From Trichosphaerium sp. ATCC 40318 (taxonomy: Eukaryota; Protista; Tubulinea), in NCBI GenBank assembly GCA_038496445.1, contig JALMLS010000316.1, positions 70,012 to 134,011 of the forward strand: a stretch of DNA of 64,000 bases, given 5' to 3'. Below the pieces are notes generated by a model. The model was not told where the DNA came from. It searched no databases and saw nothing but the letters and a program-made list of their open reading frames with translations. Within the stretch, counting starts at the first letter, position 1, and each line of letters begins with the position of its first letter. The translations under genes and the position numbers were made by a program. Shown here piece by piece: positions 13,852-52,891 of this stretch.

Positions 13852-15046
13852 GAACCTGTTACCATTGTAAAATAAAGTGTAAAGTCATATCAATTTTATA
13901 TTACTTTTTTAGTTTTTACTGTGATATGACCTACGTAAACTGTTTGTGATCCATAGGTATCTTAAACAGCTATGTTGTAGTACTATACGATAGTCCTTTC
14001 TTGGTAATTTCAGCCACCAAAAACAAAAGGGGAGGTGGCGGCACGTGCATTTTTCTCGCGCTGATTTTGTTCCCAATCAAGGGAGGTGTCAGGATACGCG
14101 AGCTTTGTTATGGTAGGCGGGTACAGAGCCCTATAAAGGGCCTGTATTCCTCGTCTGGAAGGATGTTCAATGATGTGTGTAAACGCAGTAGCGGTGTCGC
14201 AATTGTCGCCATAGTAATACAGCTACCGCCTACTCTTTACCTGCGCTTACAAGGACAATGAAACATTTGAGGTTATAGGACGTTAGTTCAGCGATAGTTA
14301 TTCATTCACATTTGGTGTGTTGAGAGTTTAGTCATAGTTTCGAAGTAAACACGTCTCCTTGGCTGACTTAAGCAATCCCTTACAACTTGTCTTAAATGTC
14401 GGGTTTAAACTGGAATGCCTCGCTAAATGGTTCTTGACTTGTTGTCTACTTCCTGTGAATCCAGTGTGACTACAGTTTCGCCGATTTAGCTGGCTATCAG
14501 AATGAATCCAACAGACGTTTGCTATTGGTATGCTATCGTACTACTGCCGCTCCCCACTGACAAAACTGAATTGAAGCGCATTTGTAGTATGACTTTGAAA
14601 TTGAAAAAAAAATAGTGGTATACAAAAACTACTACAACCCATAGAATATGTGGTACTGGTAGCTAAGGATATCTTTTTGGAAAGTTAGGGTCAGGGCAAC
14701 TTTCTTCAAAAATGAAAAATCATCTTGTTTTCGGAAAGTTGACGAAAATTCAGCAAGAAAAACGTGACGTCACTACGAAAGTATTCTTCTCTTACCATAA
14801 TTCAGCATCTTTCAATAGTAATAAGTGTATATTGTTGCCTCTGTTTGTTGTAAACCATGATTTTGTATTATTTTCACGAAGGATTATTACCAACAGATCT
14901 GACGACCGAAACTTAACGAGTTTTTAGCTGATTAATCGGTTGGACGCAAGTTGTCAAACAGTTCTTTACGATTGGTAATAATCATACGATAGTACAAACA
15001 ATTCATTTACTTTAGTGACTAGGAACTTTTGTATTTGTGTTTGCGA

Positions 15047-16996
15047 ATGACATCTAAGAGTTCAGTCACTTACACGCTAGTTGAAGCCGCAATCCAATGT
15101 TTGGACGATAATGTACGTTACACTTTTTGGTCCGGTTTAAAAAGGTTACAATAGCGTCTATATAAGTTTTAAGTGTTATTAGGGAGGTAGCCCTTCAATG
15201 CATGCGAAAGCGATTGCTGAATATTGCATCTCGAAAGGTTGGATGAACAACACCAAAACACCTCATAATTCAATATCATCCGCTCTAAACGTCCATATAA
15301 AAAAGAGCGGAAATCAATCGTATTTTGAAAAAGTTGCTCCAGCTTGCTACGCGCTCTCAAAGTACTATAATAGCCTAAAGAATGAAATGGAGGACGATTT
15401 GATGCTTGAAGAAAAGGATTTCAACGATGAGGAAAAACCAAAACTAAAAATCACGCTAAAGGTTGCCAGCGCTAATACCTCATCTCAAAATGGCGTCTCG
15501 CAAGTCCATGCGTTAGAAAAGCAGTTAGAAAATCTTAAAAAAGTTTACACATCGGACGTAAGTGGTTGGAAACAAAAGTATTTGGCGTCAGTAGTTGAGA
15601 ACAAGGCTTTAAAAAAAAAGCTTGGTAAATTGGAGCAAGAAGTACAGATATTGAAGTATGGTAACCCAAGTACGTTATTCAACGCACTAGATCAATAATT
15701 CTTCCATTCTAATTTATAATACTGCAGATCACCAGGTAGATAACGTTAGGGATTTATTGTGTAAGATTCTTACGCCTTACAACTGTGTCTAAACTGTTTT
15801 TTTGCTTTCTTTTTTCAATATTTCGGAAAAGCGTAGATCAAGATTTTTACATGCTGTTTTTATTCACTGAAATGATGAAACGTTGAATGTACTTATTTGT
15901 TCACTTTTAGATCGTGGTATGGGTAATCCTCTATGCCCTTGGTACCTCCCTAATGAAGCATTTCATTCTCTACCATGGCGAACTGTAAAGAACCATTACC
16001 AATCGGAAATAAGTGCATTTAATGCGCCAACAATTTACAACTTTGTTTCGACGCTATTCACTTCTACTGCGCCAGACTCGTGGTATATTTCGCGAATCTT
16101 GGCTATTGATAACAAAGACCCTCTACAGACAATGTTCCAACGAAGAATGCAAACAATGGGTGAGATAGGCGCTTTCGGCAAATATCACGTGCAGTTTTTT
16201 TGGTAACTTTGTTTTACTGTTTAGATATGCGAGCAAATGATCCTACGTTTGCACCTTCATGGAAAAGTGAGGCAAACGTTCCTTTGCGATCTCAATTATT
16301 AAGAAGACTTCAGTCTTTTGAGTGTACCGATCCAAGACAAGTATGTAAGTTTGTATGGGCATGGCATGGAACAGATCCTAAGTATGTTGATCAAATATGT
16401 AATGCTGGATTTGCTGCTATTGGAAAAACGGACTCAGGTTTGACGTTGAAATAATATACGTAGCTCTTTGGTACTAACATCAGTTTTTGTAGGATACTTT
16501 GGTAACGGAATATATGGTTCTATCCAAGCTAAGTATTCTGGTACTGTATACACAAAACACAAATGTTTATTGCTATGTGTAATGTCATTCCTCAACGTAT
16601 TTCCAGTTGTACGTTCCTTGCTTTTTTTGGTCAATTACAACATAAACTTGTTTTTTTCCCACTTCGTTCACGTGTTTGTTCCGCTTCGATTGTTAACCTT
16701 GTTCAGGTTCATGATGATATGAAGATGCTTATGGGAAAGAATGCATATAAAACATATGATGCTCATTATATACCAGTAGTACCACGTGATCCAAATGATC
16801 CTGATGAGACAATATTTTACGGACTTGATAAAAAAACACTGTTCCTGTTTACGACGAATTTGTTGTGTTTGAGGTACGGTTACTCAACCTAACGTTAGAA
16901 ACTCAACTCATATTTGATATTTAGGAATCACAAATTCTACCTAGATTCGTTGTGTATTATGAAGATGCTGAAGAGAATTCAATGGATTGTGATTAA
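15047..16996 (+). CDS. HARE-HTH + coiled coil + PARP-type ADP-ribosyltransferase domain protein (1-nt frameshift in an A7 run at 16830-16836)
   Basis: HARE-HTH pattern TLVEAAIQCL..PSMHAKAIAEYCISKGW..KTPHNSISSALNVHI..FEKVAPACYAL. ART motifs WHGT, GYFGNGIY, YDEFVVFEESQILPRFVV. Intron 15670-15910 joins the halves in frame. Confidence 0.75.
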
Positions 16997-36854: not shown

Positions 36855-38570
36855 GCTTTAACTTACACCTCCTACTATTCCTCTACAAATTGAAGGACCA
36901 ACTACCAAAGTTATAACTCTGGCACCAACAGATGTAGTACCAATGACAACAACTGGAGCACCGCCAAAGTGTAAGTGTTTCTACGTACATCTAGCTCTAG
37001 GAAAACTAATGGAAGGAATTTTGTTTGATTTGCCAGATGAAATGTGGATTAAAAAAACAAACCAAACTGGCAGTATTGCTGAACTGTGTGTACAAGAAGG
37101 CTGGTGTATAAACTCTATACAACCAAATACACAAGAATGTGAGTGTTATTACTCTACTATGAGTTTACTTCTGTATAGGGTTTAAGGAGCAGTATGTATG
37201 TAACTATTGTGCTAAACATAAGCACAATGGAACTACTGTAGAAATTTTTTTAACTTGTGGGTAGGAACTAATTGATGATGTACACCTAAAATGTAAGCAT
37301 GGCACATATGCTATTCAGCCTATCAAACCAAATACAGAATTAGGAGACACTACTGCTGGTACAATCAATGCTGCTCTACCAACCATTTAATTTTGAAGAC
37401 AGGATTAAAAAGTAAGACACCTTGGGACTTAAACCCTCGATTGGAGTATGCACATGGATGGGATAGATCAAACAACAAGTTGAGGTTTAATGTCGTTAAT
37501 TTGGTTTAATAGTTTATAGGGGTTTTAATAAAAAAGCAACCCATTACAGAACATTGGACCTTTTTGATGAGAATGACACTGTAGCGAAAAGAGAACTAAA
37601 GTTTCTTCATGAACACATTGCAAAAATGCACGGATATGAGCAAGTCACTGTTAAATCCACATATGCTTGCTCTTATGATGAATCTCAAGGCGACAAAACT
37701 TTGATTTTGAGTCTAGTTACACCTGGAAATGTGTATCCTGTATGTATATTCAGTTTTATTTTTATTTACTACAATGCTAGGTAATAGAAAAGCCTACAGA
37801 CGTTTTTAACTTTCAGGGTAAGCCTATTAAACCAGGATACCAAAGTCACTATACAGTGGTAAACAACAAAGGACAAGCTGTAAAAGACAATATTGACAAG
37901 TATAACTGGGATGAGTTGGTTGTGGCTCAAGGTAACTAGTCTCATGTGAGCTGTAACGGTGGCTTTCTTTTTACTGTTAATTTAGATGTGCAAGCTGTTG
38001 CACGATATATCATTACAGTCGCAAAGAGGCCAAAGAAACGGGTAGTGATCCCTAAAAAAAAAAATAAAGTAATGAAGAAAACAAAAAAGGCCAAGATCAA
38101 AACTATTGGAAGTGAAAACCTAGAAACCAATGAGGTTTCAAATTCTGAGAATGACAGCGAGTCAGATGAGTTGGTTGATGAAGAGTCATTCAAAACTAAA
38201 CGGTAAGACTGACAACACAGAATAGCTCACTAACTTACTTTCAAGAAAACTATGGGCAGCTGCAAATCCAAATCAACCTGATCAACCAAGTGTCCAAGAT
38301 CTGCATGTAAAATCACTAAAAAAAGAAGTCACAAAGCTCAAACAAGAAAACAAAACCATCATTGCCGAATTTGTGGAAACAAATACCAAATTGCAAGAGG
38401 TGCAACAAGCTAACACATTACTCCAGAAAATCAACGCCAGCCACGAGGAAAGCACAAACAACTACCTTGACAAAATCGCCAAACTGGAAGAAGAAAATGC
38501 AAACCAATGCTCTCAAATTGCCAAACTACTAGCCCGAATTGCAAATCTAGAAGGTAATGTGAGCTCTTAA
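36855..38570 (+). pseudogene. Inverted chimeric copy: mucin fragment (paralog of 52.0 kb) fused to the 3' part of the ANK-ART gene, with the catalytic HGT...GIYFT block deleted
   Basis: VITLAPTDVVPMT matches 52015-52060(-). LMEGILFDLPDE.., DLFDENDTVAKRE.., DELVVAQ and the coiled-coil tail match 46798-48840(-). VTVKS is joined directly to TYACSYD. Confidence 0.8.
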
Positions 38571-38719
38571 ACTATGTATGAATAAATGTAAATAAGGAAC
38601 TAACTGCCTGACACTCCTGCTACAGGTTTCTTTATGTTAGTTACAAAAAAAGTAAGAAGTAAACGTGAAGTTCATGTAACAAGAAAATCAGTTTTATTAG
38701 CATAATTCTATTTGTTTTT

Positions 38720-40518: not shown

Positions 40519-43034
40519 TTATAGGAGCGTTATAATTAGCATCATGTAAGAACAACAACAAACAAATAGCCAAGTACTGTGTTGAAGCATAGGCAGCGTT
40601 GATGAGGAACTTGAGGTTGGAGCAATTGTAGTGTTTGAAGGTTGTGTTGGTATTACAGCCGACGGAACTGTAGGCCCTTGTGTTGTTGGCGATTGTGTCG
40701 GTGTAGGTAAAGTTGTTGGCGCTACTGGATTTGGTGTTGTTGTTGGAGGCAATGTCGTTGGTGGCGCAGTTGGTGCCTGAGTACTTGGAGGTGGAGGCGG
40801 GTTGTATTTAAAAGCAGAGATTCCCAAAGTGACACCAACATTCACATCTGTTTTAATGACAGATAGCGTTGTAGCGTTGATGTGTACTAAGTTGCCATTT
40901 CTACAAGAGCCAACAAGAACATCACTTGATATTGGTGTGATACCTTGTTTTTTTATTTGTAAGCTTGAGAACGTAAAAAAATGATTGATTGACGTACCTG
41001 CCATTTCACAATTGGGGATTGATGCTGAAGTATTTGGCAAACATGAACCAGCCATAAAATTAGTTGCTTGAGTTACTTGGTTAGTACCAGCAATATACAG
41101 AACGTCACCGATAAGTGTACCTAACACAAGTTTAGGATCAAGGTTTTTGTAAGTAATGTTTGTAGTGTACCACCAGACGCTGATGTTGTTTGGTCGTTGC
41201 AATGTTGAGAATATTCACAGGTCTCCATATCAATTTCTAGGATGGTATGGCCTAAACTCTCACCAAAAATCCTTCCACTTTCTGCATCTACCATCAAACC
41301 AAATGTATTAGCGACAACAGCGCAAGTCCTATCCTATTCAAGGAAGTTAATACATAAACAACTTATCACTGTTCAACAAAATGTTTGCCGGAAAAAAGCA
41401 ACGTACGATTTCACATGTGTAAGGATCAACCGTGAATATCTTACTATTGAAATTGATGTATATGATCTTATCAATAGAACTGCTATATGCTAGTGCAATT
41501 GGAACGGTGCCCAGACCTGGTGTAGAGCAAGCTGATACAATGATTAATACGAGGTAGAAATACAAAATAAATACTTACATCCAACAATATCACTTGTGTT
41601 TGAAATCATTCGATAATCAAACCCTAATGGATCAATTGATTCTGATCCTCCTCTTCCTGTGATAAATACATCTATTGTACCTCCATCCGGAGCTATTGTA
41701 GGTTGTAGAGTGGGTGCTCCAGTACTAGGTGATACAGTAGTAAAAGGAGCGATTGTTGTTGATATATCATAGAACATTGATGCGATTGCATTTCCATTGG
41801 ATATGCTTGTCGTGTACGATGATGTTGCTCCTGTGTTGATATTAAATTTCTGGAAGCCATATAACGTTGATGCAACCACCTCATCATCTGAAATAAAAGC
41901 GAGTGCTAAGAAGAATATATCAGGAAAAGACTTATCTTACCATGCCAATTTACATACCTGTAGGGCCAATTGGTATTGAGAAAGTGCCTGTTGTAGATGC
42001 AGTACAATTTTGCGCATTAAATGAGGGAATAACTGATAAAAATCCCGCGCCACTTGCTACCAATGTTGAATCACTAAACACGACTATACATAGAAAACAA
42101 TTAGGGGAACATATATATAGTCTTAGCGGAAATTGTATTACTTGCAACTTTCACACTACTCTTTTTTTGCTAGGTCTGTACCTCAAGCTGGAAAAATGCA
42201 AGAGGTACGAATTAAGACTTTTCGAAGTTGCCAATATTAAAGCTGTAGATAAAAGGGTTTTTTCCCGTAAATACGTATTTACAGCCAAAATCACGTGATT
42301 AAATTTGTTGGCTTACGAAACGTTTTAAAAGTAAAACTTAGCAAATGTAATCTAGACGCACGGGATGTTCCTGAAATAGTTAAATTAGCTTCGCAAGCAA
42401 GCTTAAAAGTGACATCACAGGTTGAATAGTCTATTTCTGAAAAAAACGTTATTCCGGGTCCACGTCCACCCGATGTGCTACTAATTGCGTAAAGTATCTC
42501 AGTGTTTGGATCTACACTAATTGAACCGAAACCTGTTGTCAACGAGCATTCTTTCTAAAAATAGTAAACAAACAACAAAATGCTACAATCGCCTGAAACC
42601 AACGCTCAGTAACACGTGAACAAGCATTTTGTATATAATTGCGGAGTAAGTCCGACTGTTACCAGTTTCAAGCGGCAAATCGCTTGAAGGATGTGCGTAC
42701 CTGTATCCGGCATGTATAAGGATCCATAATAAGAAATGTTGGGGTTGGTGGAGTTGTTTGAGCTGTTACAACAAAAAGCAAGTTTTTAGAAGGCAAGTAT
42801 GTCATTGATCTTATCGGTGAAGTGATATTTGTACATGCTAATGAGGGATTATTATAAAAACACAATTTCTGATCAAAACGTGATCACCGTACTATGTACA
42901 ACAGTGTCGTCGCTTGCGATCATGCGTATTTCAAATCCATTTTGTGTTCTCGCACTGATAAAGGCGTTGGGAGTCTGTGTTCTCACCAGCGCAATAACAA
43001 TGGCGAGAACAATAAATTTATATCGAGTATTCAT
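40519..43034 (-). CDS. Secreted/GPI-like surface protein with repeated beta-rich modules and a Pro-Thr stalk (multi-exon)
   Basis: Signal MNTRYKFIVLAIVIALVRT; recurring (M/V/I)D(P/Y)xTC motifs; PT-rich stalk; hydrophobic C-terminus. Confidence 0.75.
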
Positions 43035-43444
43035 TGCGTTGAGTTTTGCTTTCAAGAAAGAATGAAGAAGTAAGAACAAGTCTTATTTTTTTTTGTAGTT
43101 TTTCTAACGTGGAAAAACGGGCGTAAACCAGTACTAAAAAGTGGGTAATAGTTAACCGAAATAGAACCAAACACAAAAATAGACACAATCCTATTTTTCT
43201 ACGAAATAAAAGTCAAATACCAACAGGATTAGCTAATCCTGGTTTTTTTTCTCAGAAAAAAAGTGGGTTTGTGTTTCTCTGACACCTCCTATAATGTAGT
43301 ATATTCGCATTGGTATTCATCAGCAGCAGCTGGGACGTCATGCCTGGCAGCGTCATGTTTATAGACTTGCTTCAGAGAACAGTCCGAAATTAGCGAAATG
43401 TAAAAAAATTGATTGAATTTCTTAAGTTGGCTGTTTGGCACGGC

Positions 43445-44130
43445 CTATCCCAGTTATATTTGTCAATATTATCTTTTACAGCTTGTCCTTTGTTGTTTAC
43501 CACTGCATAGTGACTTTGGTATCCTGGTTTAATAGGCTTACCCTGGTAAGGATACCAAAGTCACTATGCAGTACAATTCTGGTAATAGACCCACCTGCAT
43601 AATGTAAAGGTGTCCATCCATCATTGTCCAACACTTGCGCCTGATTGAATTAACTGCTTACTTAATCTTTTGTGTCCATGTTTAGCTAGTATTTGTAAGC
43701 TGAAAAAGTTCGTTCAAGATCCAGTATGATTACAACAGTACCAGCACAGTATAAAGCTATCAAGAGCGCCCGCGATTCTTTCCGTAGCCGATCTTCTACG
43801 CGATCTGCTAGAAGCCAGCAACGCAGCGAGGCGCAAGAGCAACCACTCAACGTTGGAAAGTGTGAGAACATAAATTGATAGTTATTTACAACATTACCTG
43901 CAAAGTGTAACGCTGTTTCTCCATTGTTATTTGTAACATTTATATTTGCATCAGCGTTAATCATCTTTAGTCATATTATTGTATCCACTTCATGCTCTAA
44001 AGTGTGAAAATATATCGCTTATTTACAGCAAGTACCTGCTTTGTGTAAAGCCGTCTCTTCTTCTTTATCTGTTGCGTTTATCTCCTTTTTCATCTGGATA
44101 ATGTGGGCGTGTAGATAAATTACCTGTTGT
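43445..44130 (-). pseudogene. Scrambled remnant of an ANK-ART paralog
   Basis: ART fragment GKPIKPGYQSHYAVVNNKGQAVKDNIDKYNWD; ANK fragments DGWTPLHYA, INADANINVTNNNGETALHFA, DKEEETALHKA; foreign insert at about 43690-43855. Confidence 0.85.
43502..43572. repeat. Perfect 24-bp inverted repeat with a 23-nt spacer (fold-back junction)
   Basis: ACTGCATAGTGACTTTGGTATCCT ... AGGATACCAAAGTCACTATGCAGT. Confidence 0.95.
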
Positions 44131-45879
44131 AATATTCCTGAACTCTCTTTGAAACTTCTTTGGCAAATGTGGTACTCTAATAAAGTGTTGGTCTAAGGTA
44201 ATAATTTATCAAAATTAACCAAAATACAATAAGTTTGCGGTGTTCTACAACACTTAAGAGAGTGTTGAGTGATAAACACTGGCTAAAAGCAAAGGACTCT
44301 GAGGAATTTTGCCTTGTCAAATAGGGTGGCCACTGATACAGGCAAGGTTTTTCTCGGCTTTTTGTGAGTTGTCCGTTATGAACCGCGAGTGAGCTTACTG
44401 AAAAAAAAAGTAAATCAAAGACGCTAATTACATTATGCTCGCTTCGTTCGATTGTTTAACAAATTGAATTTGGCGCAAGGTTTCCCTGGGTTTGCACTAC
44501 TTTTCGCGAAATTGATTAGAGCCACGATTGACTAAAAAATGTGAGCTCTTTTCTGCAAAAATGTAGAACATTCGCCTCCAAAAGAACAGATTTAGAAGAA
44601 ATACAACATGCCGCCAAATTTCGTGAAATGTAGTGCGTTTATGTAATCGCATGCGATTTTAGTTCAAGGCATTTACCTGAAATGCTCAAGCTACTCTAAG
44701 CATGTCTTGCGTGACAACTAAATAAAGCCTGCTGTTTTACGTGCCTGTTGGCTGTTTTTTATCACGTGATAACTCTACACGTTTGCTCGAAGCGGCACGT
44801 ATTGTTGAGGTTGTATAGTACTGCGACTGTGGTAGTTATTGAGGTGTTATAGTCAGCTTTTTTCGTACAGCTTGTTCGAAAGTGTTTTCTAACCTTAATT
44901 CTAACGCACGTAATTGTTGTTTACCTCGACTGTGGCTGTTACATTTTACCTCTTCATTTGGTTTTTCGAACAGTTTTTTTTTTTTCGAACCAATTAATAT
45001 TGTGCACACTTTACAACTTTATGTTACACCTTGTACCTTATTTCAACAAGGAGATTCATAGTTGAATACTTATAAGACTCTAGAGTCACAACATGCAGTT
45101 CATGTTGAAATACCCAGTAACGAATATTACTAGTTTAGACCAAGGTTGACCTCCCTTGGGTTGCGGGTTCAATCCCGGTTGAATGCTTGTAAACTAATCC
45201 TTTGATCTCAATGCCATATTTAAATTGGTAGTCATTTCAAATGTGTTTAAACACGCCTCCGGTAGAACTTTGCGGTCTGGACCAGGTTGGGACCCTGGTT
45301 CGTCTCCTACAACAAACCCCTGGAACTCAGTTGAGCTTCTAAAAATAATACATATAAATTATACTATAAAAAGCACAGGGTGGAAGGTCTCCTTCACTGT
45401 TACGGTCCATCAAGTAGTTGGTATCCTAGTCGTATATACACGTGGAAGATTGGTTTGGTGCAACTCCAAATGTCAACCCTTAGTGAGCACCAATGTAGGC
45501 TTGCTTAAGAATGGGTCAGTCCCAGCGTAGACAAATAAAAGTAAAGATATATTATCAGTTTTTGTGGCTGACATAGCCTATTTTATGTTGGTTGCAGTTC
45601 AGTTTAGACTGTCTTATTAGTAAGCCAGCTAGATTTCGGAATAGGAAGCGTGTATGTTTGCATCATCTTTAAAGTTTCCGCTCTCGGTAATGAAGCCTAA
45701 AATTGTGCGAGCTTCCTGTCATTTGCAGCTTGTTTACAAAGAAAACTCAAAGAAAATTAGGCGCTTAAATACGTTTCGAAACAACTAATACACGCCCCCC
45801 ACCTCTCCCGTAACGAAGCTTTTGTACTGTCAAATAAACTCGTTATCTTTATATTTTTTTATGTCTTTTCTGATTTTGG

Positions 45880-46638
45880 GTTGGAACCAGTCGCCACAAC
45901 TTGAGTTTCATATCATTGAAGTAGAAACCATTATCATTAGTAATATCCCATCCAAGAATTCTACCAAACCCAGATACTGAGAGATCAACATTTACTTGCA
46001 CTATAACATATGGACTGTTTTTTATTGCATTATTTGGGTTGTTTAATAGCAAAAACGGGTTAGTAGTTTCTGGTAGCTCTAAGCATCCCTCTGTTGAGTT
46101 ATAGTCCTCTGTTATACCCATTGTTAAGCTCCTATTGGTTGTACACTGAGAAATCATGTAGGCGGTTAAAGACGTACCCATCACCTGCGTCATCATTTAA
46201 GTTGTGTCTGTATATTCCATAGAATTCCAGGCGTTTGAGGAACTTTGCTGACCAACCAAATTTAAGGATTACCATAGCATGACAAGCACAGAAACATTGA
46301 TGGCAAGCAATGATCACCCTCTTCCCCGCCCAATCAAAGGCGAAACTTTTTGATCCTAAAACTGAATTTATTTGAAAAACAAATTTGAGGATCCCTTTTT
46401 ACCTGCATAAATACTACTTGTAAATGTATGTTCAAGAGATAAACACTTACTCGTGTGTTGTATTAGCCACCGAGACGTTAGTCTTCTCCAAACCGGTCCT
46501 GTTCTCTCTGTTGTTCACACAAAAGCCTTTTCATCTAACCATTAAAGTTGAATTCGTGTACTAGAGTTGACCATGTGTTGTTGGTAGGTACACCATAACA
46601 AATAGAGCTAAGAATACGGAAGCTTTGAAGTGATGCAT
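45880..46638 (-). pseudogene. Disrupted paralog of the LamG-like secreted gene at 51.9-52.8 kb
   Basis: Near-identical EDYNSTExCLELPETTNPF..VSGFGRIL; a 1-nt deletion creates a stop after THGQ; 334-bp insertion at 46205-46538. Confidence 0.85.
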
Positions 46639-46797
46639 CTTGTGTAATGATTTAAAGTATATTTGGCAATAAGTTGGAGATTGATTTCTTGAGTACACAA
46701 GCATATCTTTACTATCGCTTCGCTTTTTCATTATGAACTAATAATGGAGCTTGTTGTCAGAATTAGGAATAATAAAAGAAGCGACTTTATTTGAATC

Positions 46798-49700
46798 TTA
46801 GTTATATGAGCTCACATTGCTCTCAAGACTAGCAATTCGGGCTAGTAGCTCAGCAATTTGATTACATTGATTAGCATTTTCTTCTTCAAGTTTAGTATTG
46901 TGTTCCTCCAGTTTAGTGATTCTGATAAGTTGTTTTGTGTTGTTTTTCTCTTGCTCAGCTTTAGTTTTCTGGAGCTCGGCAGTAACTTCTTGCAATTTGG
47001 TATTTGATTCCTCAATAACAGTTTTGTTTTCTTGTTTGAGCCTTGTAATTTCGTGTTTTAGTGATAGTACAAGCTGGTCTTGTGCGCTTGGTTGATCAGG
47101 TTGATTTGGATTTGTGGCTGCCCATAATTTTCTTCATAGTAAATGAGTAAACTATTATTATGTGTGTAGTCTTACCGTTTATTTTTAAATGAGTCTTCAT
47201 GAAACAACTCATCTGACTCATTAACATTGTCTGATTTTGAAAGCTCTTTGTTTGTCAGTTTTTTATTTCCAGTTGGTTTGATGATCTTGGTCTTTTTTGG
47301 CTTGCTTGATTTCTTTTTTGTTGTTTTACTTTTGTTCTGAACTATCCGTTTTCTTGACTTTACAACCTTAATAATATAACGTGCAACAGCTTGTACATCT
47401 AAATAAACAATAAGAGCAATACTTAAGGCCATATTAGACTATTTTACCTTGAGCCACAACCAACTCATCACGTGGATATACATCAATATTTTCTTTTACA
47501 GCTTCTCCCTTTTTGTTTACCACTGCATAATGACTTTGGTACCCAGGTTTAATAGGCTTACCCTTAAAGTTAATAGTATTTGTAGGTTTTTCAATTACCT
47601 ACCAATATTGTAAATAAACATAGAAACCAATGTTTGCATACAGGATACACATTGCCAGGTGTAACTAAACTCAGAATCAGAGTTTTGTCGCCTTGAGATA
47701 CATCATAAGAGCATGCATAAGAGAGACTACTCTATGGGATTATTAGAACAAGAACAAAGTGATGATTAAGTACTGTAAAATAGATTCCTTGTCCATAATA
47801 TCCAGCATCCAAGGCACTTACAGTTCCAAATCCAGCTTTTACAATGCTATAAGCTGCTTCAGCACGTGTTCCATGTGCCATTAACACAACAGGTAACTGA
47901 AAAATTAGTCACAAGTATGATGATTGCTACTACTACCTCTGTGTTGTTAGTTGGTACAGTTATCAAAGATGAAAACTTGTCGTAAACGTTTGTTCTTTGA
48001 ATGTGGTGAGTGTCACGTCTCCAATCATCCTTACAAAATAACTTGGGTAGTTCCCTAAAGTAACAATCAATAATCCTTACAACATGTTTACATACTGGTG
48101 CCTATGTTGAAGTATTGTGTTGTACATCCCAAAGTTTCGAAGCAAGACATCATTGCAAACAAGATGAGCTGATTTAACAGTGACTTGATCATAGCCATGC
48201 ATTTTAGACATCTGTTCATGAAGAAACTGTCGTTCTCTTTTGGCTACAGTGTCATTCTCATCAAAAAGGTCCAAAGTTCTATAATGTGTTGCCTTTTCAA
48301 TAAAACCCCTGTAAAATGTTAAACAATATAACAATGTGATAACTCAACTTGTTTTTTGATCTATCCCAGCCATGTGCATACTCCAATCGTGGGTTTAAGT
48401 CCCATAACGTCTTACTTTTTAATCCTTGTTGAAATCAAATGATTGTATTAACATTACTGTACCTGCTATAGTATCTCCTAATACAGTATTGGGTATGATA
48501 GGCTGAATAGCATATGTGCCAAGTTTACATTTGAGGTGCATGTCATCAATAGGCTTCTACCCACAAGTCAAAAAGAATATACCTATTTGACATACACTTT
48601 CTTTGTGCGTGTTTTGAGCACATTTGCTGCATATGTGAAGCTTATTTACCACTATACTAACAGTTAAAAGAATTGTATTTGATTAAAACTCACAATCTTG
48701 CGTATTTGATTTATGCAGTTGAATGGAGTTTATACACCAGCCTTCTTCTGCACACATTTGAGCAACATTACCAGTTGGTTTTGTTTTTTTACTCCACATG
48801 TCATCTGGTAAGTCATACAAAATACCTTCCATTAGTTCTCCTTGTTCAACCCAAAAGCTCTATAGTGAAATTAGCTGTAATACCTTTATAAAATTTGATA
48901 CCGAGGATTGTACAAATATGCGATTGTAAGTACAAATTAATGAACATATACCCTTTTGCATTGCAAGATTAAAATAAGAATGTGTTGGCTTAGTATGATT
49001 AATTTTCATATTTGACATAAGGCTGTACCAAGTACTGTAGCCATTTTGCAAGATGATATCTCCATTTTGGAGTGTTGACATTTGAACATGATAGCCATAG
49101 TGAGTGATTGTGTTGATTAGTTGGAAATTGTGACAAAACAGTTTCAAAAACTTTGGTGTATGCGGGATCATTGTCAACTACCTTCATCAATATAGTTCTA
49201 AAGCCAAACTTCTGTCCTCTCATTGTCCGTGAAAAAACATCATTTGCATTTGATAAGATGAGAAATACTGCTGTATTTTTACAGTGTGCTAATAGAGGTT
49301 GTTATTTAATGTTTTGCAAATAGAATCACCTGCATAAATTAAAGGTGTCCATCCTTTATTGTCTACTGCTTCAATACTAGCATGTGAGTTAATTAACTGC
49401 TCAACTATTCTACTGTGTCCACGTTCAGCTAGCCTGTATAAGTAAATTGTATTGTTAAGATTAATACCAGCAACATGTAAAGCTGTATGTCCATGGTTAT
49501 TTGTAGCGTTGACATTTGCATCTGCATTTATCAATAACTTAACAGTTTCATGGCGCCCACAATGTACTTAAGAGTTTTGAGAACATATTGTATTACAACA
49601 CCATACCTGCTTTGTGTAAAGCTGTCTTTCCATCTTTATCTGCAATATTGATATTTGCACCTGCATTGATCAATAAGCTAGCAATACCATGAAAAGCTGC

Positions 49701-50602
49701 AATTTGTGAGAACACAATGTATTTACAACACCGTACCTGCAACATGTAAGGCTGTCTTTTCATCTTTATCTGTACTATTGACATTTGCTCCTGCATTGAT
49801 CAATAACTTAGCAATATGATCATGTCCATAAAATGCTTAGAAATGTGAGAACAGACACTGTGTTTACAACAGGTACCTGCAAAATGTAAAGCTGTACGCC
49901 CATCTTTATCAATAACATTGGCATTTGCTCCTTCATTAATCAATAAGTTAGCTATAACATTGTGTCCATTAAACGCTGAGAAGTGTGAGAACAGACATTG
50001 TATTTACAACATAGTATTTACAACACCATACCTGCTTTGTGTAAAGCTGTTTGTCCATCTATGTCTATAGCGTTGATATTCACATCTGCATTGATCAGTA
50101 TTTTTACAACATTATCATCACGTCCATATTGCACTAGAAAATGTGAGAATATCTATTGTATTTACTGCAGTACCTGCTTTGTGTAAAGCTGTTCTTCCAT
50201 ATTTATCTACAGTATTGACATCTATCCACATTAAACACATTGATGCAATATTTGGCAAATCAGCACATGCTAAATTAAGTTGATATGCGCTTACGTCCAT
50301 TATACAAACCTGAATACAGTAGAATTTTTTTGGCTCTCTCTGGACTACATAGTTTGTCCTTTAGTTTGTTTACTACAAACACATGAACAAGTTACCTAGG
50401 ATAAACAGTACCTGTTGTGACATGCTTGAAAACTTTTTTTAATAATATTGAATCAAAGTCTACGCCCAAGATAGAAGTATCAAGATTGAAGCGGCGAAGT
50501 TTTTTCAGTTCGTCTAGGCATTATTAGTAGCTTATGTATTAAAACAAGTTTGATAATACCTTTTAAGTCTCGGTTAACTTCTTCTTGGCCCTGGATTGAC
50601 AT
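46798..50602 (-). CDS. Ankyrin-repeat + PARP-type ADP-ribosyltransferase + C-terminal coiled-coil protein (one apparent frameshift near 49030)
   Basis: At least 6 ANK exons (G+TALHxA). ART motifs MAHGT, GYYGQGIYFTSSLSYA, LSLVTPGNVYPV, GYQSHY, RDELVVAQDVQAVARYII. Lys-rich and coiled-coil tail. Start codon tentative. Confidence 0.8.
49330..50230 (-). repeat. Tandem ~140-bp exon+intron modules, one ankyrin repeat each
   Basis: Exons 49330-49428 (99 nt), 49468-49566 (99), 49607-49696 (90), 49737-49835 (99), 49877-49975 (99), 50032-50133 (102), all phase 1. Introns share GTAYGGTGTTGTAAATAC..GTTCTCACA..AG. Confidence 0.9.
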
Positions 50603-51940: not shown

Positions 51941-52795
51941 CTAGAATAATGTGTGGAACACAATTAATGCACCTGTAGTAACAAGTACCAAAGCAAGCGA
52001 GGGGGGAGTTAATGTCATTGGTACTACATCTGTTGGTGCAAGTGTTATAACTTCAGTAGTTGGTACCTCAGTCTGTATAGGAGGTGTATTTGTTGGCGCT
52101 TCAGATAATGGAGGTATAGTTGTCGGTGGTTCTGTTGTTGACGATATAGTTGGCATTTCTGTTGTTGGAGGTACAGTAGTTGAGGCTTTTGTAGATGGCA
52201 CTTATGTCGTTGGTGGAACAGTAGTTGGTATAAAATCACAAGAGTTTGTTGAAGGTTCAAACCTACAATATAGTGTTACTATCTACTGGCTATGTACTGC
52301 GTTTGGGTTGGAGTTTTTGGCTCTAGAAGCTCGGACGCACGCGAAAAAGATTGTGTTGAGACCGCTTTGTAAATTAGAAGTTTGTGCATTGGAACCAATC
52401 CTGTACACTTGAAGTAAAACTGGGTAGTATCGTATCCCACAAGAATTCTACCAAACCCAGATACTGAGAGATCAACATTTACTTGCAATATAACATATGG
52501 ACTGTTTTTTATTGCAATATTTGGGTTGTTTAATATCAAAAACGGGTTAGTAGTTTCTGGTAGCTCTAAGCATCTCTCTGTTGAGTTATAGTCCTCTTTT
52601 ATACCTATTGTTAAGCTCCTATTGGTCGTACAGTGAGAATACATCTCGGCAGTTAAAGACGTACCCGTCACCTGCGTCATCATTTAAGTTGCCATTGAAG
52701 TTGAATTCGTGTACTAGAGTTTGACCATGTGTTGTTGGTAGGTACACGATTACAAAATAGACAGCTAACAATGCGGAACCTTTGAAGTGATGCAT
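51941..52795 (-). CDS. Secreted LamG/ConA-like domain + Pro-Thr stalk protein (3' structure uncertain, possibly degenerate)
   Basis: Signal MHHFKGSALLAVYFVIVYLPTTHG, then QTLVHEFNFNGNLNDDAGDG|SLT (GTACGT..AG intron), SGFGRIL, and a PT-rich stalk. Confidence 0.6.
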
Positions 52796-52891
52796 CTTGT
52801 GTAATGGTTAGAATTATCCTGCCAATGAGAGATTGAAGTATATCTTTACAATCGCTTTTGCAAGAAAAATATGAGATAACAAAACACTTTT

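Follow-up and report, generated by a model that had tools for sequence, protein, structure and literature searches.

An ankyrin-repeat ADP-ribosyltransferase gene with a predicted coiled-coil tail in Trichosphaerium, and the protist ADP-ribosyltransferase subfamily around it

We analyzed a 64,000-nucleotide stretch of the genome of Trichosphaerium sp. ATCC 40318 (assembly GCA_038496445.1, contig JALMLS010000316.1, positions 70,012 to 134,011 of the forward strand; hereafter the window), in which an earlier note, made from the letters alone, had pointed out a gene joining ankyrin (ANK) repeats to an ADP-ribosyltransferase (ART) domain. On our reading, the gene probably encodes an intact, cytoplasmic or nuclear protein of 960 amino acids (aa), in which ANK repeats, an ART domain and a coiled coil are combined by a tankyrase-like logic that evolved independently. 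Judged by its sequence, it is one of a small set of paralogs with fast turnover that extends to Trichosphaerium transcripts and lies inside a wider protist ART subfamily.

The gene lies on the minus strand (50602..46798), and its model was built by setting GT-AG introns such that the frame remains open. The resulting model starts with the ATG at 50602, ends with the TAA stop codon at 46800-46798, has 23 exons separated by 22 GT-AG introns, and yields a coding sequence of 2883 nucleotides (nt), or 960 codons without an internal stop (Table 1). The introns are 38-56 nt long, the majority being 39-42 nt, and every one of exons 2-11 starts in phase 1. The window has a GC content of 35-39% and tiny introns; for the Trichosphaerium draft genome, 37.69% GC, 8.7 introns per gene and small exons were reported (PMC10521059). 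The model is collinear over ten exon junctions with P0001, a transcript-derived, intron-less relative (E 1e-107), with 44% identity over 472 aa and 38% over the part spanning junctions 11/12 and 12/13. A frameshift near 49030, suspected in the earlier note, turned out to be a 40-nt GT..AG intron (49028-48989) in the size class of the other 21, the removal of which restores the frame. Indeed, the spliced exon 11/12 junction reads KWLQYL/PTHSYFNLAMQKGICSL (WLQYL/PTHSYF, the slash marking the junction) and its equivalent in P0001 reads EWLPYLPTRSYFKLAMEKGICYL (WLPYLPTRSYF); the frameshift was thus rejected on the grounds of the intron and of the junction motif conserved in P0001. Since the frame change is an intron and the spliced frame is collinear with P0001, the gene is predicted to be intact.

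Exons 4-10, of 96, 102, 99, 99, 90, 99 and 99 nt, each code for one ankyrin period and have phase 1 at both ends. This agrees with the one-repeat-per-exon organization described earlier for six exons of 99, 99, 90, 99, 99 and 102 nt, which correspond to exons 10 to 5, and exon 4 adds a degenerate repeat beyond those six. Exon 6 alone matched PF00023 with 25.0 bits against a cutoff of 21.1, and the seven repeats could be aligned; the tandem 33-residue repeats matching Ank profiles place the predicted product among the ankyrin-repeat proteins. The mean pairwise identity of introns 4-8 is 0.78, versus 0.61 for all other intron pairs of the gene, and was reached by none of 20,000 random five-intron sets and none of 300 shuffles, whereas introns 9 and 10 showed no similarity to other introns of the gene. 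The claim that the introns of the array are homologous to one another thus holds for introns 4-8 and fails for introns 9 and 10. Because introns 4-8 are homologous, unlike introns 9 and 10, and the repeats of the window gene and of its relative are more alike within each gene (0.51 and 0.64) than between genes (0.46), exons 5-9, together with the more degenerate exon 4, appear to be a recent local expansion or a homogenized block. Tandem Repeats Finder detected an array with a 130/140-nt period at 49573-50011 (78-81% matches), and the exon and intron of the repeat units align together (alignment A1); with the intron homology, these results bear out the proposed growth of the array by tandem duplication of exon+intron units. 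The greater length of intron 5, 56 nt, stems from a 14-nt stretch that is duplicated inside it, and exon 10 resembles the repeat type of a Trichosphaerium relative (IEAVD...LIYA). Since the repeat exons are symmetric (phase 1-1, lengths in multiples of 3), losing or gaining one unit would preserve the frame, as had also been proposed. From unit to unit, the exons are 0.65-0.86 identical, which is not above the 0.54-0.86 of the introns. Exon divergence equal to or above that of the introns could reflect relaxed or diversifying evolution of the repeats, with 40-nt introns being mostly splice signals and the samples tiny. The ratio of nonsynonymous to synonymous substitution (dN/dS, Nei-Gojobori) between ANK exons was mostly 0.3-0.7, with one value of ~1.1 and higher values for the degenerate exon 4, and is uninformative at ~30 codons per pair.

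For the domains of the window protein, the evidence comes from single exon pieces (exons 6, 11, 13 and 17-23 were scanned with Pfam) and from relatives serving as proxies. The triad motifs lie in exons 19 and 21, with His (in HGT) at 47873-47875, Tyr (in GIYFT) at 47780-47782 and Glu (in DELVV) at 47464-47466. The relatives P0001 and P0002, which are 44-47% identical, matched Pfam PARP (PF00644) with 30.9 and 36.5 bits, above the cutoff of 26.7. A search of PDB with the single sequence of P0001 was marginal (E 0.04), and a family profile was required. The profile of seven family cores matched PARP12 (8e-9), PARP10 (3e-6), PARP4 (1e-5), ZAP (2.5e-5) and PARP15 (5e-4), followed by PARP14 and PARP1 at ~0.02, and no tankyrase was present among its 60 best matches. 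In the profile alignment to PARP12, HGT falls on HGT and YGQGIYF on YGKGSYF, the His and Tyr triad positions, and the Glu of DELVV sits one residue before the aligned FVIFE of PARP12, the stretch at which the printed alignment begins. The PARP12 residue before FVIFE is presumably Ile, its third triad position. With His and Tyr on the PARP12 triad residues and Glu at the position of this Ile, the triad thus reads H-Y-E, as the earlier note had recognized from the motifs. Furthermore, an AlphaFold2 model of residues 160-420 of P0001 (mean predicted local distance difference test score, pLDDT, 70.8; predicted template-modeling score, pTM, 0.73) retrieved only PARP catalytic domains with Foldseek, at probability 1.0 and with a target template-modeling score of 0.68-0.73 for PARP12, suggesting, by proxy of the P0001 core, that the window ART domain has the PARP catalytic fold. 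The ESM Atlas returned generic PARP/WWE clusters only, below a score of 0.9. No match to SAM, WGR, PRD, WWE or macro domains was found with Pfam in the scanned exon pieces or in P0001/P0002, and for SAM there was none at E<=1 in exon pieces 11, 13, 17 and 18 or in P0001/P0002. Similarly, no NACHT/NB-ARC or other STAND NTPase was found in the scanned exons or in the relatives, exons 12 and 14-16 not having been scanned singly.

The middle region, exons 11-16, gave no Pfam match and partly shares the motifs WL.YLPT.SYF.LAM.KGIC, LM.GI..D.PDD.W and GLKS..WD.N.RL with the Trichosphaerium relatives. The Cys/His-rich insert within this region, which contains H-x-C-x2-C-x4-H and H-x-K-C, is absent in the Trichosphaerium transcripts P0001 and P0002 and conserved in frame in a paralog inside the window; it is possibly a small zinc-binding module. 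After the catalytic domain follow a Lys/Arg-rich stretch, an acidic stretch, the motif RKLWAA, the coiled coil and LLARIA.LE, and this entire layout is conserved in the relatives. Exon 22 has 23 Lys and Arg residues in 80 aa, its Lys-rich/acidic layout is kept in P0001, P0002, P0009 and P0010, and it may serve as a linker resembling a nuclear localization signal or as one for automodification or poly(ADP-ribose) binding. The tail comprises 88 aa free of Pro and Gly with a heptad periodicity equalled by 37 of 2000 shuffles, which supports the coiled coil that had been proposed.

We then searched for relatives of the gene. When 1.84 billion representatives were searched exhaustively with exon 17 (phmmer), only P0001 and P0002 were true relatives, the match P0003 being rejected as a coiled-coil false positive; a few further relatives came from word-indexed searches. 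Closest to the window gene are four Trichosphaerium (Amoebozoa) transcripts, P0001, P0002, P0009 and P0010, none of which is annotated or described. P0001 and P0002 come as short intron-less contigs from one Joint Genome Institute (JGI) sample, and P0009 is labeled MMETSP0405, taxid 498012, which is Trichosphaerium sp. ATCC 40318, placed there in Amoebozoa, Discosea. A tree built from ART cores joins the window gene to these four transcripts with 100/100 support, P0009 being the nearest at 71% identity. The transcripts share with the window gene the Lys-rich/acidic linker, the RKLWA motif, the coiled coil and the LLA.IA.LE end as well as the ART clade, whereas they are 44-54% identical overall, are without the Cys/His-rich insert, and have ANK repeats homogenized to another consensus. 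The transcript of P0001 (L001) codes for at least seven ANK repeats directly upstream of the ART open reading frame (ORF), with only an N-gap between them, and the ANK-ART-coiled-coil architecture thus appears to be conserved.

Around this clade, we defined by sequence signature an amoebozoan/protist ART subfamily, PGYQSHY, with the motifs LF.KDDW, [HQ]GT, LD.GYYGQGIYFT, PGN.[YF]PV, PGYQSH[YF] and DELV[VI], all of which are present in exons 18-21 of the window gene. When JGI metagenome and metatranscriptome contigs were scanned with the core alignment, 143 contigs were found to code for ART relatives, and in long uninterrupted ORFs of environmental contigs the subfamily ART is C-terminal. According to Pfam, the domains N-terminal to it are FG-GAP with EGF repeats (L013, L020, L025, L027), EGF-type domains only (L017), leucine-rich repeats (LRR; L030, L033, L047), Roc-COR (L032, L036, L028), Ras/Roc with LRR (L072), Kelch (L023), SUEL lectin (L019) and ANK (P0008 and the clade of the window gene). 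A single tight ART clade (100/99 support) contains Kelch, LRR and lectin partners mixed together, a sign of domain shuffling. As far as these sequences tell, the subfamily ART thus serves in protists as a C-terminal output module attached to binding domains of many kinds, and the idea of a sensor module wired to an ART effector finds its support at this level of the family, with LRR, Roc-COR, Kelch, lectin, FG-GAP/EGF and ANK as partners. To our knowledge, no ROCO protein with a PARP output has been described. The literature searched held no description of the subfamily or of ROCO-, LRR- or Kelch-PARP fusions, an absence that is not proof; the Trichosphaerium genome paper makes no mention of PARP or ankyrin (PMC10521059), and the subfamily is nearly absent in annotated protein sets. 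The FG-GAP/calcium-binding-EGF ORFs, of up to ~1,600 aa, have an ectodomain-like part followed by ART, a receptor-like layout with ART where a kinase is usually expected. In addition, P0005, a short relative grouping with L027, has a transmembrane-like segment at its start.

The intact gene and two decayed copies of it lie within 15 kb inside the window. The plus-strand remnant forms an in-frame fusion with a Thr/Pro-rich mucin-like ORF that begins at 36862, and it lacks everything upstream of exon 13. A 451-nt deletion removes its His and Tyr exons, a net loss of exactly 108 codons by which the frame is kept, and DELVV and the coiled coil are retained. Its identity to the intact gene is 88/89/75% at codon positions 1/2/3 and 79% in the introns, which points to coding constraint for much of the time since duplication. 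The chimera at 36862-38574 (+) could be a catalytically dead decoy pairing via its coiled coil, or a young pseudogene. Its mucin-like part (...EVITLAPTDVVPMT...) resembles the C-terminus of a LamG-like/mucin gene at ~52.2-51.9 kb. The second remnant, on the minus strand, is a pseudogene (Table 1).

The architecture was compared with those of known PARP proteins. Tankyrases combine ANK repeats with a polymerizing SAM domain and a PARP domain. Tankyrase 1/2 (PARP5a/b, clade 4) thus resemble the window gene in having ankyrin repeats for recruitment at the N-terminus, a module for self-association and a PARP domain of the H-Y-E type, whereas the window gene is without SAM and instead has a coiled coil C-terminal to ART, has seven or eight repeats against 15-18 or more, carries a family-specific middle region, belongs to an amoebozoan host and has a catalytic domain nearer PARP12/10/4 by profile. 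The clade-1A ankyrin PARPs of the Dictyostelium ADPRT3 and C. elegans PME-5 type also have ANK fused to PARP, but carry WGR and PRD upstream of the catalytic domain, neither of which was detected in the window gene or its relatives. PARP12, PARP10, ZAP (PARP13) and PARP15 (clade 3) and PARP4 have in common with the window family the HG[TS] and YG.G.YF...Y motifs and a compact domain without PRD; the identity is weak (~13-17% in structural alignments), clade 3 has Ile, Leu, Tyr or Thr at the third triad position, where the window family keeps Glu, and its partners are WWE, macro and CCCH zinc fingers in place of ANK and a coiled coil.

If the gene were a true ortholog of tankyrase or a clade-1A ANK-WGR-PRD PARP, with a housekeeping role in telomeres, spindle or DNA repair, it would likewise have ANK repeats and an H-Y-E PARP domain, and Foldseek does list tankyrase catalytic domains among its many PARP matches. 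This reading is highly improbable and largely refuted: membership in either group was rejected because SAM, WGR and PRD were missing in the scanned pieces and in P0001/P0002, and because the profile ranks PARP12/10/4/ZAP/15 above any tankyrase, none of which appears in its best 60 matches. The family is also very narrow, with 2 close relatives in 1.84 billion representatives, and tankyrases are reported from animals only (PMC2964712). The view of the earlier note that the gene is no tankyrase and has no SAM domain is thus upheld. ANK+PARP fusions arose independently several times (PMC2964712, PMC4245714), and the ANK-ART-coiled-coil gene is, as judged from its domains, of an origin independent of tankyrases and clade-1A ANK-PARPs.

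We infer enzymatic activity, oligomerization, target recruitment and a biological role for the ANK-ART protein along the following lines. The protein would consist of a short N-terminal region, seven or eight ankyrin repeats, the middle region, the H-Y-E ART, a basic-then-acidic linker and the coiled coil. The ankyrin groove would recruit a protein partner or several of them, oligomers of the enzyme would form through the coiled coil, and the ART domain would spend NAD+ on the ADP-ribosylation of the recruited partner, of itself or of both. This would be a tankyrase-like logic reached by independent evolution, with a coiled coil for SAM and a catalytic domain nearer the PARP12/10/4 type. Several points weigh against this account. 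The start codon is the first ATG, and the 5' end and N-terminus are putative; exon 19 alone scores 20.9 bits against Pfam PARP (E 2.7e-4), below the cutoff of 26.7, in a domain that is split over five exons; the fold and triad are assigned partly via P0001, which is 44% identical overall; and no protein identical to that of the window gene occurs among the 1.84 billion representatives. Furthermore, the H-Y-E triad does not tell mono- from poly-ADP-ribose synthesis, and Gln replaces the triad His in L032 and L028, Roc-COR contigs with a cleanly read His motif, so that activity is not universal in the family.

A sensor-effector gene for defence or conflict, in which a fast-evolving ankyrin surface binds a pathogen or virus ligand and triggers the NAD+-consuming ART within a large repertoire of sensor-ART genes, is a tentative and less probable reading. 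It draws on the presence of the ART subfamily on LRR, Roc-COR, Kelch, SUEL-lectin, FG-GAP/EGF and ANK modules with partners intermixed in a tight clade; however, such combinatorial architectures are also typical of ordinary signaling families, e.g. ROCO kinases. The repeat exons have diverged at least as fast as their introns, but the 40-nt introns are themselves constrained and thus make a poor neutral yardstick for fast exon divergence, the dN/dS between repeats is mostly 0.3-0.7 in tiny samples, and the repeats vary at positions that are variable in all ANK proteins. Turnover is evident from the one intact and two decayed copies within 15 kb, whereas the codon-position patterns of the paralogs point to purifying selection. 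The nearest solved relatives are PARP12/10/ZAP/15, the vertebrate members of which evolve rapidly under host-virus conflict (PMC4038475), and the Trichosphaerium genome holds 1581 giant-virus-derived genes (PMC10521059), that is, the host has seen heavy giant-virus traffic. From architecture and turnover, a defence role is plausible, and a general signaling role with tankyrase-like logic would fit the same data. It is unlikely that the gene is instead a silent or decaying member without a present function, next in line for loss from a birth-and-death cluster. Two neighboring copies are already broken, and the searched collections contain no identical transcript-derived protein, though related Trichosphaerium transcripts are present; against this stand the 960-codon frame over 23 exons with all 22 introns GT-AG, the fully intact catalytic motifs and the AATAAA after the stop codon. 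An intact ANK-ART-coiled-coil protein is the reading that we favor.

The neighborhood of the gene includes two signal-peptide LamG/pentraxin-like genes, at 45852-46737 (-) and 51944-52807 (-), which flank it in the same orientation and have one exon that is 94% identical (45944-46204 versus 52433-52691). In the upstream copy, a Thr/Pro-rich mucin-like stretch follows, which probably includes a transmembrane segment. A repeated two-gene cassette at the DNA level was considered and rejected, since self-comparison matched only the one LamG-like exon (94%) and the ART blocks. Long ORFs at 40522-42900 (-), between the two ART remnants, code for Thr/Pro-rich mucin-like and repeat-rich, extracellular-looking segments. 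Farther away, an intron-containing gene at 15023-16921 (+) encodes a more distant ART with motifs in the style of the subfamily (WHGT, GYFGNGIY, NVFPV, YDAHY, YDEFVVFE) and an unrelated N-terminus.

Table 1. Features of the ANK-ART gene and its remnants, in window positions
Feature	Position	Strand	Basis or remark
Whole coding region	46798..50602	-	Splice model and collinear P0001 alignment
Exons 1-3, ~70-aa N-terminal region	50310..50602	-	Without family match; no relative extends over it
Ankyrin array, exons 4-10	49330..50269	-	One repeat per phase-1 exon; Pfam Ank/Ank_2 on exon 6 alone
Putative recently duplicated exon+intron units, exons 4-8 and introns 4-8	49567..50269	-	Period ~140 nt
Intron 11, 40 nt, GTACAG...ACTAAG	48989..49028	-	Junction motif kept in P0001
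Exons 11-16, middle region	48349..49288	-	Partly conserved in Trichosphaerium relatives
Cys/His-rich insert, ~74 aa, residues ~443-516	48470..48772	-	In frame in paralog inside the window
Predicted PARP-like ART catalytic domain, exons 17-21	47448..48308	-	Pfam PARP on exon 19; family profile; AlphaFold2 and Foldseek on relative
Exon 22, Lys/Arg-rich then acidic Ser/Asp/Glu stretch	47176..47398	-	Composition and layout in relatives
Exon 23, RKLWAA motif, predicted ~88-aa coiled coil, C-terminal LLARIA.LE	46798..47131	-	Heptad periodicity; relatives
AATAAA, candidate poly(A) signal, 7 nt past stop codon	46786..46791	-	Direct sequence reading
Paralog remnant, exons 13-23 only	36999..38574	+	75-78% identity to intact gene
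Second remnant, 3-4 ankyrin repeats joined to exon 21 fragment (GKPIKPGYQSHY...), then broken off	43393..44192	-	Pseudogene

The locus offers a clean case of repeat-array growth via duplication of exon+intron units with introns that are still recognizably homologous, and the gene adds an independent case of ANK+PARP, with a coiled coil for SAM and a PARP12/10/4-type catalytic domain keeping its Glu. It is rather improbable that the gene belongs to a large, undescribed, innate-immunity-like amoeba repertoire in which interchangeable sensors share one dedicated death or signaling effector, the H-Y-E PARP-like ART. If it did, the repertoire would be an ADP-ribosylation-based counterpart of receptors with TIR or kinase output, formed under conflict with giant viruses and with intracellular bacteria, and the ANK array, with its one repeat per exon, would allow quick re-specification. 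The ART subfamily is of more use than the single gene, as it makes ADP-ribosylation as a general receptor output in some protists a testable idea.

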